From NCBI GenBank assembly GCA_964199315.1, contig OZ116698.1, positions 21,390,001 to 21,454,000 of the forward strand: DNA of 64,000 bases, given 5' to 3'. Source of the DNA: Orbicella franksi. Its lineage: Eukaryota. The notes under the pieces are model-generated. The model searched no databases, was not told the origin of the DNA, and was given only the letters and a program-made list of their open reading frames with translations. Position 1 is the first letter of the stretch. Every line of letters starts with the position of its first letter. The translations under genes and the position numbers were made by a program. This document shows, in pieces, positions 19,248 through 27,604 of the stretch.

Positions 19248-19911
19248 TTATTCCGGCTTGTAAGAACAACGTCGTGATGGTGTATATTCGGCCAGTTCTT
19301 CGTTCGATTCCTTCAACACAGTCAAGAATCTACCAGTTTCTTCCATTTCTAACGCAAAACTGTCCGCGCACTCGTGTCCATCAGAAGAATTCACCATTGC
19401 TCGGCACTCTGCCACTTCATTTAGGACAATAAACAGTAGCTTTACATTGCGTTCATGCACCTTCGTGAAAAATCTCACTCTCCTCTTCAAAGCCTTTTTG
19501 TCTTTGCTTAGTGTTTCGTTCGATGCCTTCGCAGCTTCAACGTCTGCATTTTCGACTTCGTTTTGCTTCGGTTCGATGGCATCGAGGAACTTTCTTTCGT
19601 TTTCGATGATCGCGTCCAGCATTTCATGAAAAGAGTTAAACTTTCGAAGGAGTTCATAGAAGTTTTGTCGACTCTCTGCGTTGCAGATACCGCGTATGAA
19701 CCTCAGCTTCCACAGGATAACTTCGTTGTGCAGTTGTGTTTGAATTTGTTCCATTTTTGTTAACAGTTCCTTGGAAGTCTTTATCAAACTCGTGCATGTT
19801 ACGGCGGTACAGCATCTGGAGCCGTTCCTCAATACGTCCTGGCGGGCACATAGAGAAAGAATTCATGTTATAAGACAACGCCTTACTCACATACCCGGTT
19901 TCCGGAGTCAT
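19248..19911 (-). CDS. Uncharacterised alpha-helical protein (about 203 aa), paralogue of the plus-strand gene at 24.7-27.6 kb
   Basis: Open frame 19248-19838 preceded by the acceptor TTTCTCTATGTGCCCGCCAG. Candidate first exon 19891-19911 (MTPETGY, donor GTGAGT) joins in phase 0 across a 52-nt intron; the 5' structure is uncertain. Coding status is supported by ungapped protein similarity to the 27278-27604 exon. Confidence 0.65.
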
Positions 19912-24684: not shown

Positions 24685-27604
24685 ATGGGAACCACAATGA
24701 GCTCGGTGGGCTTGGCCAATAAGCCACCTGCGCTGCCACCAGTAAAACAAAACAACAATACGGTTAGTGGCTGGTTTGCTCTCAAAATATTGTTCATTTC
24801 ACCAACTAAAGCTGACATGCATGACCTTCTTATTGTCATTTCAATTTGTTTTTGCCATATTATGGCTTCACAGTCTTAATACGCAACCCTTAAAAGTTTC
24901 TTCGCAATCAGCCTTATATTCACCTGGCGAATTTTATCAAGATTACCATCAACATAAAAATCATGTTATTTTCTCGAGTGTCAAGAGTTCGTAGCAGATC
25001 TGTCTGTTTGCCAATGCTATTTTCATTCCAAGTTCTAGTTGAAAGTTGAGCATTTAGAACACTGGTTTACAGAAGTTGTCGCTAATTTAGTTAAGGTCTG
25101 TTAATTCAAATTGAATTTTCGAACTCAAACCAAAATCGGAAATAAATACGGCTTGTCTCACATTCAGAAACATAATATCTAGAATTAGTATGGGTAATCG
25201 TATGAATGCGGTTGCAATTAAGGATTGATAAAGTATGACTGATATTGGGTAATTTTCTCAAAATTGCCAGAGCCTTAAGGGATGATTTTCACTAGCGTAC
25301 ATTAAGCATAAGCAACACACGCCGTAAGGTGCTGTTAAGTAGCGCCTTTTGTTGGGAAATTTTCCTAACAAAAGGCGCTAATTATCAGCGTCTTATTGCG
25401 TCTGCGTATGTCGGCTTATGCTTATGCGCTAGGGAAAAACCAACCTTAAGAGCCTTGTTCCGTTTAACTTCAAGACATTCAATATTAAAATGCTGCAAAC
25501 CTTTGGCGTTAAGGCTTAAAGATTCCATAAGATTCAAATTCTCCAGAATACGTTTAGTGGAATATCTCGCCATTTAATCAAAGCAAACCGTTCAGAACTC
25601 ATGTAACGGGGTATAAAATGCATAAAATGTCTCCATGGTTTCAAACTTAGAGTAACTTTGAAGACCCCATCGTGAAGGTGTGTATGTTCGTTTTGTTTGT
25701 TACTTAACGTGTGTTTGAAGTTGTGTGTTGCAGCCATTTTCATGTTCATTCTGTGACTGACTAACTGACCAATGACAAGACAAGGAAAAGACAGCTTCCT
25801 TCAATGTTGTGTGGACAGGTGTTTCAAGTGTGTCGTAACGTTATTGTCTGTGTTTTGAGATTGTTGTTGTTAATGTGATATAATATAACTGTGACACTGG
25901 TAAGTTTCTCTTGGCGTCTTGTCAAATTCACGAGTTAAAGTAAGTTGTGTTCTCTACATCCACTAAGTCACTAGTTTCCATCATACAACGCGTTCTGAAT
26001 TACTAGGTGCAGATTAGTTAAACGAGGCCGTCAGTCTTTGTTAGACCTGATGCAATGCTGAGTTGTGGATCTTAGTATAGGCCTACAATACAGTTTTATC
26101 TCACTTTTTCATTCAAGTCTTATGAGGTCCCTTCTTTAAACCAGTTTTAGTGAAGTTGGCTTCCCCAATAGAAACTTACCGTAGTTAATTACACTGGTGT
26201 GCGTCAGCTCACTTAATACTGCATTAAGGCAACGCGTGGTCATTTCTTAATTAACTCTGCCAATCGAAATAGTGTTCCTAACAGGCCTTCTAAGCCTTTT
26301 TCTACTGACAAACCTTCTTAAGGTTATCGCCACCAGCTGTATTCCGTGCATATCATGACACATTCCTAGCCAATGTAGTTTTTACTTTCGTTTTAGGGAG
26401 TCTGGACGCGATACCTTTAGAGAGACCTTCCCAACATTGCCGTTAATTTACCTGATTACCCTTGCAAGAACAATCTAAATATTGTAATTTTTTTATATGT
26501 ACTATAGGTAATACCCACTGCACAATCTCCTCCGGACTACAAGTTTGAACACTTTACCAAGCTCTGCCAGCAGTATCAAGAACAGAAGAAAATCTTACAG
26601 GTACAAGAAACTTATTTCTCTCTAGCTCGTAAATTAATAGCTGAGTAGATTAAAACAGAGCATCCGTCCCTACATTCCCGATCCGCACATTATGTTCCTT
26701 GAAGCAGCTTGGTTTGTTTCGCCAAATTTAGAATTTCTGTGAGTGCCGTGAACGTTCTTCCCAAGTAAAAGGAAGAGAGAGTGGAAGTGTGAACATTTTT
26801 CTCGTGGATATGCACATGCATCAGTAGTGCAAGTACATTTTCTTCGAAATACGTTTGCGTCCCTGGCTCTTCATATAATATATAGATTTAGGCCAGCCTA
26901 AAAGCGGAGCTCCTCAGTTATTTTTCGGAATGTTGTTACTAATGAAAATAATCCAACATGTATGAGGTAAATTGCGAATGATTTAATAGTTTCAGCCGGA
27001 ACTAGTATTATATCAGCAGATCGAGGTGTAAGATGGTGTGATTATGAAATATAGAGCCATGATTTCAAGGATTTCTTGGAAGCCACCAAAAATCTTGATC
27101 ACATAGGGGGAAAATGCATTCTGTGACTTGAGTTCAATACCGAGTTATTAGCCTCATCTAGAACTCGCAACTAGCCAACTCCCACTGACTGCGCAGGCTT
27201 AAAAATTCAGTTCCGTCGGCAGGAAGAGGTTTGCAACGCTGACTTTTCCAGCTAAGGATCTTTCGCAAATTTCGCAGGTACAAGTTCGGACCGAAGTACA
27301 TAACTGGCAAAAGCTGGCAAAGAACGGTGATGAAGGAACAGAATGTCGTGAGAAGATTCTGGGCTTACTGAGCAAGTTTCGCGAGGCACAGAGACAGCAA
27401 GACTTGTTAATAGAGAAAGAGAAGCTAAGGCTTGACGCATTCAGAAACTGTATCAACGAGGACACGACAAACAGAATAAAAAAGAGATTAACTTTCTTCC
27501 AAAAACTGAACAAACAGCATGAAGCGCTGTTAGAACACGTGCGGCAGGACATTCAAGATTGCAGAATGATTTGTAAGAAGTTTAACGATTCAAGTGGAAA
27601 GTAA
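24685..27604 (+). CDS. Uncharacterised alpha-helical protein (about 165 aa, 3-exon model)
   Basis: Exons 24685-24762 (GCCATGG start context, MGTTMSSVGLANKPPALPPVKQNNNT, donor GTTAGT), 26508-26600 (VIPTAQSPPDYKFEHFTKLCQQYQEQKKILQ) and 27278-27604 (VQVRTEVHNW...CRMICKKFNDSSGK*). All junctions are phase 0. The last exon is the best supported; a donor AA|GTAAGT at 27600 could extend the gene. Confidence 0.55.

Follow-up and report, generated by a model that had tools for sequence, protein, structure and literature searches.

Evidence for a head-to-head pair of paralogous genes from an undescribed, cnidarian-restricted family of small helical-bundle proteins in Orbicella franksi

Introduction

What do two short, divergently oriented coding segments encode when they resemble one another and match no family that can be named at sight? 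This question is raised by a 64,000-nucleotide stretch of the Orbicella franksi genome (assembly GCA_964199315.1, contig OZ116698.1, positions 21,390,001 to 21,454,000, forward strand), hereafter the window, in whose numbering all positions are given. An original prediction, made from the letters alone, had aligned a minus-strand open reading frame (ORF) with a plus-strand exon, and proposed an old inverted duplication of a small helical-bundle domain without a described family. We refer to the minus-strand gene as A and to the plus-strand gene as B. The observation is confirmed and its interpretation supported; the exon map needs correcting in two places, at the first exon of A and at the last exon of B.

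We are highly confident that A and B are two real genes of an undescribed, cnidarian-restricted family. The fuller statement, namely that they are transcribed paralogues under purifying selection, belong to a family confined to cnidarians and work as lipid-anchored adaptors, is one that we hold, taken whole, to be somewhat likelier true than false.

Sequence relationship of the two exons

The ORF at 19248–19832 (−) and the exon at 27278–27604 (+) translate as they were first quoted; the two ungapped blocks of likeness sit where they had been placed, and the identity counts, 19/56 and 10/33, are exact. BLASTP aligns the two exon translations with 35/127 identities (E 2e-8). Compared as spliced proteins, A and B reach a Smith-Waterman score of 106, against 32.9 ± 5.1 for 5000 full shuffles (z 14.3), and z is 9.6 when shuffling is confined to blocks of 12 residues. 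No shuffle of either kind attains the real score; chance coiled-coil likeness, which had been judged unlikely from the rare residues that the two segments have in common, is excluded. In an alignment of 16 sequences drawn from both subfamilies, L, F, I, E, R, FF, L, V and C are invariant, and W, G and D are nearly so.

Gene structure, transcription and selection

Gene B encodes 189 amino acids on the plus strand, its coding sequence running from 24685 to 28211 in four exons (24685–24762, 26508–26600, 27278–27600 and 28136–28211) behind an exon of 5′ untranslated region (5′UTR). RNA evidence over 21800–27750 was taken from raw polyA reads (run X24) and from RNA contigs (X1 and X2). The non-coding 5′ exon occupies 23614..24008 (+), the start being a lower bound, and is joined to 24628 (joint 24006/24626, cut +2, GT..AG; 14 raw reads and 2 contigs); ATGs upstream of the start codon run into a stop after 2–22 codons. 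Exon 2 (24628..24762, +) is coding from the ATG at 24685 (MGTTMSSVGLANKPPALPPVKQNNNT), and almost the same N-terminus is found in Nematostella (P0061) and Actinostola (P0170). Exon 3 (26508..26600, +; 31 codons) contributes PPDYKFEHF and the start of helix 1, and exon 4 (27278..27600, +; 107 codons and 2 nt) the remainder of a three-helix bundle. The junctions on either side of exon 3, 24762/26508 and 26600/27278, had both been foreseen and are confirmed by raw reads and contigs (joint 24761/26507, cut +1, with 10 reads and one contig; joint 26597/27275, cut +3, with 12 reads and contigs).

The first correction concerns the end of exon 4, which had been set at 27604. A loose end past 27600 is carried by 21 reads and one contig; its consensus maps uniquely to 28136, and on this consensus and its unique match the junction 27600/28136 is founded. 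As the reads continue beyond 27600 into 28136, the TAA at 27602–27604 lies within a GTAAGT donor. The last coding exon (28136..28211, +) follows the acceptor ...TCGAAG, encodes SKGFETWIKCPASPAYDYGSIGSL and stops at 28209–28211, and the tail that it specifies recurs in Nematostella, Actinostola and Xenia. The full protein matches the 191-residue Nematostella model XP_032225892 from first through last residue. Between coral and sea anemone, gene B is 65% identical; exon 4 retains 64–75% protein identity to other anthozoans at saturated synonymous sites.

The RNA departs from the assembly at two points of gene B. Base 24678, 7 nt 5′ of the ATG, is missing in 16/19 reads and in both contigs, and in an alternative form of the 24762/26508 junction, seen in 7 reads and one contig, position 26508 reads C, not G, a substitution that would turn Val27 into Leu. 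Both departures may be allelic or strain differences, or a slip of the assembly. Two polyA runs under one species label, X22 and X24, gave 2 and 514 aligned reads, respectively; the contrast could reflect another tissue or stage, or another taxon under the same label.

Gene A encodes 232 amino acids on the minus strand, with a coding span of 19248–22071 divided between exons 22071..21964 and 19838..19248. The last exon (19248..19838, −) holds 196 codons and a stop at 19248–19250, and is defined by the ORF, the acceptor (...CCGCCAG|GAC, its CAG lying just before 19838) and the orthologues. It encodes a cysteine cluster, RCCTAVTCTS, a three-helix bundle (~19386–19790) and a fourth, acidic C-terminal helix. 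The coding part of exon 1 (21964..22071, −) comprises 36 codons, MGIVISFCWRVLHRIPFTKKK...DSIPT, up to the donor GTAATT, and the 5′UTR extends at least to 22288. This exon is homologous to the N-termini of Stylophora, Desmophyllum and Montipora models, and full-length A orthologues start with MGIV[LF]S... and join ...DS(K/R)LT to DV.RNGSRCC. The intron, 19839..21963 (−; GTAATT...CAG, phase 0), is accordingly drawn from the orthologous spliced models P0009, P0010, P0023 and P0002 together with the splice sites. Here lies the second correction: a junction 19891/19838 had been suggested, and its donor is unsupported, the orthologues placing the donor of A at 21964. The exon ending at 19891 (MTPETG...) was rejected because no orthologue carries a matching sequence, and the MGIV exon at 22071–21964 is preferred.

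Transcripts are found for both genes, as spliced reads for B and as exons present in RNA data for A. RNA contigs cover exon 1 of A at 21963–22288 (X2) and 22036–22239 (X1). For its last exon, 0.6–0.9 of the sampled words occur in 14 RNA runs from several studies, some of them polyA-selected; the same runs contain only ~0.3 of the whole 8.8-kb stretch, as expected if mainly exons are present. Purifying selection is likewise apparent. Exon 2 of A, compared with Desmophyllum, has a nonsynonymous rate (dN) of 0.084 and a synonymous rate (dS) of 0.88, a ratio of 0.10. Because dS against more distant loci (L003–L005, L007, L008) is at or near saturation, only the Desmophyllum comparison yields a usable ratio; for exon 4 of B, the protein is conserved while dS is saturated.

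An undescribed family, apparently confined to cnidarians

Among named relatives, a protein of Oculina patagonica matches the minus-strand ORF best (82% identity); Desmophyllum, Stylophora and Montipora supply others. When 1.84 billion representatives were searched exhaustively with a profile, 36 clusters were returned at E < 1e-3, and those that bear a name are all cnidarian (Nematostella, Xenia, Hydractinia, Hydra, Desmophyllum, Porites). A second profile, to which hydrozoan and divergent A-type members had been added, again retrieved cnidarians only and added Actinostola, so that the named members overall come from Nematostella, Actinostola, Xenia, Hydractinia, Hydra, Stylophora, Montipora, Oculina, Desmophyllum and Porites. 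Within the range of these sequence searches, the family is restricted to Cnidaria, and the suggestion that it might be lineage-restricted is thereby borne out. In the window's own genome, A and B are its only copies.

Searches for a described family were negative. Pfam gave 0 families for A and, for B, only TcdB_N (E 0.071; 13.9 bits against a cut-off of 27); among 27 diverse members, no Pfam family was matched by more than two, the best E being 0.002. Sequence and profile searches of the PDB produced rows at chance level only (Blo t 21, E 0.62; nesprin-2, 0.044; BEM3, 0.15), feature searches of the ESM Atlas with P0009 and P0061 gave no usable match, and a full-text literature search for six locus names of the deposited models found no paper. 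The Pfam and PDB sequence results uphold the claim that no described family applies.

The family is undescribed rather than unseen, because uncharacterized models have already been deposited for several cnidarians. B-type models are Nematostella LOC5501706 (XP_032225892), Actinostola QZH41_008404, Xenia LOC124439004 and, among hydrozoans, Hydractinia LOC130613352 and Hydra LOC101238082; A-type models are Stylophora LOC111333072, Oculina ACROYT_G002100, Desmophyllum OS493_035920 and one Montipora foliosa model. Two older Nematostella models, P0063 (EDO47905) and P0064 (EDO30238), fuse a B-type domain to unrelated sequence, one of them under the name F5/8 type C domain-containing protein; RefSeq now has the clean 191-residue protein XP_032225892.

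Phylogeny and conserved gene order

A maximum-likelihood tree separates an A clade from a B clade with support of 100/98. The B clade unites hexacorals, an octocoral and hydrozoans on short branches, and the A clade contains stony corals and three long-branched pairs; B is the slowly evolving type and A the faster-evolving one. The tree is rooted at its midpoint only.

The head-to-head arrangement of A and B occurs in four assemblies. Besides the window, these are Desmophyllum, where B and A are divergent with dynamin beyond A; the European Nucleotide Archive (ENA) contig ERZ25072724:ctg140096, with A(−) and B(+) 22 kb apart and again dynamin beyond A; and the ENA contig ERZ25073789:ctg148480, in which a VWA-trypsin gene is followed by B(−) and A(+), 4.5 kb apart. 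The B protein of the last, octocoral-like contig groups with Xenia at 100/99. If the contig is truly octocoral, the inverted duplication predates the hexacoral-octocoral split. The split of the tree and the conserved pair together bear out the idea of an old inverted duplication. Between the outermost transcribed bases of the two genes lies a gap of at most ~1.3 kb (22289..23613, unstranded), presumed to be a shared bidirectional promoter region.

The pair was also said to lie between dynamin and a complement gene, and so it does. A dynamin exon (17538–17699, −) is found beyond gene A. On the other side is a factor-B-like gene (−) with trypsin exons, two VWA exons, and EGF and Sushi domains, whose parts lie at 29963–32251, 32841–34636 and 37848–38405. 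This gene, spanning 29963–38405, stands tail-to-tail with gene B, and its trypsin exons have the His, Asp and GDSGSP motifs. The factor-B-like neighbour of B is kept in Nematostella, where B is tail-to-tail with a Sushi-VWA-trypsin gene, and in the octocoral-like contig.

Two further features lie within introns of gene B. A 230-nt element at 26876–27105 reaches an RNA depth of hundreds to thousands, against ~35 for the exons, with sharp loose ends on both sides; it has at least 1267 candidate genome copies, of which the 40 scored are 97–100% identical, and looks like a young, high-copy interspersed repeat (resembling a short interspersed nuclear element or a miniature inverted-repeat transposable element) that is transcribed somewhere in the genome. 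At 25327–25393, an Rfam scan of 19000–28600 gave its sole row, MIR6024, a plant microRNA (miRNA) family, at 33 bits against a gathering score of 72, which we take as chance. The segment coincides with RNA contig loose ends at 25329–25363 and raised X2 depth, and is probably another repeat or a hairpin rather than a miRNA.

Protein anatomy and predicted fold

A and B have a common plan: an N-terminal MGxxxS, a disordered linker of ~30 residues and an up-down-up three-helix bundle of ~125 residues, the chain ending ~25–80 residues past helix 3. AlphaFold2 (AF2) models built with family alignments are three-helix bundles whose cores have a predicted local distance difference test (pLDDT) of 85–97, in keeping with the helical-bundle domain of about 110 residues first proposed (~110–130 in the models). 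In exon 2 of A, the helices span residues 17–49, 54–95 and 103–151, with a fourth at 158–184; in the Nematostella B orthologue, they span 36–72, 77–115 and 118–162, and both ends are disordered. A complex prediction for the A bundle and the B exon-4 domain scored 0.00, its chains being poorly folded without alignments, and weighs neither for nor against a possible heterodimer.

Each paralogue has features of its own. In A, a conserved cysteine cluster (RCCTxxxCTS) precedes the bundle, helices 2 and 3 flank a variable insert, and an extra helix is added at the C-terminus. B ends in a tail, W[IL][KR]CP....YD[YF]GS[IV]GS[LI], that is conserved from octocoral to stony coral. An A-type copy of another cnidarian (P0073/P0098, locus L005 10001–10954) bears a ~150-residue insert of HPSVTA-like repeats between helices 2 and 3, which indicates that this loop tolerates large insertions.

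The MGxxxS start of both proteins is the consensus for N-myristoylation, and the PROSITE-type pattern MG{EDRKHPFYW}xx[STAGCN]{P} is found at the true N-terminus of 12/13 full-length members, including A and B of the window. Neither protein has a segment of transmembrane strength, the maximal 19-residue Kyte-Doolittle values being 1.11 (A) and 0.21 (B).

For comparison with known folds, the models were searched exhaustively with VIA-align, in which Z below ~13 is common among unrelated helical bundles. For A, syntaxin Habc domains come first, with 3lg7 at Z 13.1 and 1s94_B at Z 12.8 (root-mean-square deviation (rmsd) 2.1, 116/118 residues), and further rows are 2xhe, Sso2, syntaxin 6, syntaxin 12, Vam3 and Vti1b. 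For the B orthologue, Habc domains (2xhe, 1s94, Sso2) reach Z 11.8 over 118/118 residues and share first place with helical domains of STAT and MukF. Scores lower than those of Habc were obtained for spectrin and plakin repeats (Z 8.8–10.5), and the spectrin repeat PF00435 gave no Pfam match.

A proposed lipid-anchored adaptor and its alternatives

Taken together, we propose the following mechanism. An inverted tandem duplication before the hexacoral/octocoral split would have produced the pair, which has since stayed head-to-head, probably with a common regulatory region. Each protein would be held at the cytosolic face of a membrane by an N-terminal myristate; in A, a basic/hydrophobic stretch may strengthen the anchor, as might S-acylation of cysteines. 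The Habc-like bundle would provide a protein-binding module, and the disordered tail of B, W-I-K-C-P-x-x-P-A-Y-D-Y-G-S-I-G-S-L, which is strictly conserved, could serve as a docking motif.

Several points weigh against this account. Lipidation, membrane location and partners of A and B are putative, and the adaptor function is a proposal. The Hydra N-terminus, MGATLIK, fails the N-myristoylation consensus, and some prokaryote-style ORF calls (P0171, P0172; transcript contigs of related corals) have an in-frame upstream ATG. Foldseek searches of the PDB, AFDB clusters and the Atlas returned nothing significant (E 0.03 or worse), and the likeness to Habc is no better than scores typical of generic helical bundles. 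The junction of the gene A intron is founded on orthologous models rather than on reads, and expression of the two genes is unequal, as the reads of run X24 cover B and none falls on exon 1 of A. No A-type gene was found within 10 kb around B in Nematostella, and with a root at the midpoint, A may date back to the cnidarian ancestor or may have emerged later, within Anthozoa.

The alternative that survives best, to which we give perhaps half the weight of the anchored reading, accepts the same genes and family and takes the proteins to be soluble, cytosolic or nuclear, with MG as a favoured start context that brings no lipidation. It is encouraged by the weak specificity of the PROSITE-type pattern and by its miss in Hydra, as well as by the N-terminal 35 residues of B, which are polar and disordered. 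Against it, both paralogues preserve Gly2 and a small sixth residue in hexacorals, octocorals and Hydractinia alike, even as the linker that follows diverges, and A carries the basic/hydrophobic stretch typical of a second membrane signal.

It is rather doubtful that the bundle is a very diverged relative of the Habc domains of syntaxins and other SNAREs, in which case A and B would regulate membrane fusion by imitating SNARE or SM proteins or by binding to them. Syntaxin Habc chains do lead both exhaustive structure comparisons, syntaxin-12 is the top row among AFDB clusters at E 0.03, and the fourth helix of A aligns with closed syntaxin (2xhe_B, 162 residues aligned). On the other hand, the Z scores fall within the range of unrelated helical bundles, Habc is equalled by STAT, MukF and designed bundles, and sequence identity to the matched chains is 6–12%. 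A and B have neither a SNARE motif nor a C-terminal anchor, and the Syntaxin, Syntaxin_2, Syntaxin-6_N and SNARE profiles matched none of the 27 members up to E 1 and neither window protein up to E 10.

Very improbable is a reading in which the hydrophobic N-terminus of A is a signal peptide or signal anchor, so that A is secreted or luminal and B cytosolic. MGIVISFCW is indeed hydrophobic and A has 8 cysteines, but an Arg ends the hydrophobic run after only ~7 residues, the Kyte-Doolittle value over the first 19 residues is 0.80, well under transmembrane or signal strength, G2 and S6 are invariant in 4/4 A-type N-termini, and paralogue B is clearly devoid of a signal peptide. Finally, chance coiled-coil likeness or dead gene copies, which have a helical, low-complexity-like composition in their favour and nothing further, are scarcely credible in view of the z scores of 14.3 and 9.6, the spliced transcripts, a dN/dS of 0.10 and orthologues spread over Cnidaria.

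Significance

Phylum-restricted genes are thought to underlie cnidarian-specific traits such as stinging cells, symbiosis and calcification, and few of them offer a structural or cell-biological handle. The family reported here is small and strongly conserved, with a confidently predicted fold, a predicted lipid anchor that can be tested and a tail motif that is conserved, and the head-to-head arrangement of its gene pair has lasted very long. Nematostella, Hydractinia and Hydra, in which tagging and knock-outs are routinely done, have orthologues. The gene models of the locus are corrected as well, and the mis-fused older Nematostella models are flagged. Taken alone, the finding is modest: an undescribed family with a common fold.

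A bolder version can be put forward as a long shot. A and B would be a cnidarian-specific, lipid-anchored, Habc-like pair, divergent beside the factor-B-like gene since before the hexacoral/octocoral split, that acts jointly as a lineage-specific regulator of membrane traffic or secretion, with the B tail WIKCPxxPAYDYGSIGSL as a new docking motif. If this were true, the setting of the joint regulation might be, for example, cnidarian-specific secretory cells or symbiosis.

Comparison with known systems

The closest counterparts are the deposited cnidarian models themselves, which are true orthologues and paralogues, alike in N-terminus and bundle and, among the B type, in the C-terminal tail as well; they are entered as 'uncharacterized protein', none with a name, domain or publication.

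BORCS5/myrlysin (PF10158) and LAMTOR1 are small N-myristoylated helical adaptor proteins. They resemble A and B in size (~160–230 amino acids), in the MGxxxS start and in a disordered linker followed by helices, and a peripheral membrane adaptor mode is what we propose for A and B too. The PF10158 (LOH1CR12) profile found no match in Pfam scans of the window proteins or of the 27 members. BORCS5 and LAMTOR1 form extended helices within multi-subunit complexes, whereas A and B are predicted to be closed, monomeric three-helix bundles.

In fold, the nearest system is the syntaxin Habc domain (squid syntaxin 1, 1s94; Monosiga syntaxin 1, 2xhe; yeast Sso2, 7q83), an up-down-up three-helix bundle of ~120 residues that faces the cytosol, as A and B are predicted to do. 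It gives the best superposition for both paralogues (Z 11.8–13.1, rmsd 2.1–2.6, nearly the whole domain), at scores no higher than generic helical bundles reach. Unlike syntaxin, A and B have no detectable sequence relation to it, no SNARE motif and no C-terminal transmembrane anchor, and their predicted anchor is an N-terminal lipid. Since sequence signal, SNARE motif and C-terminal anchor are all absent, we describe A and B as resembling Habc and do not class them in that family.

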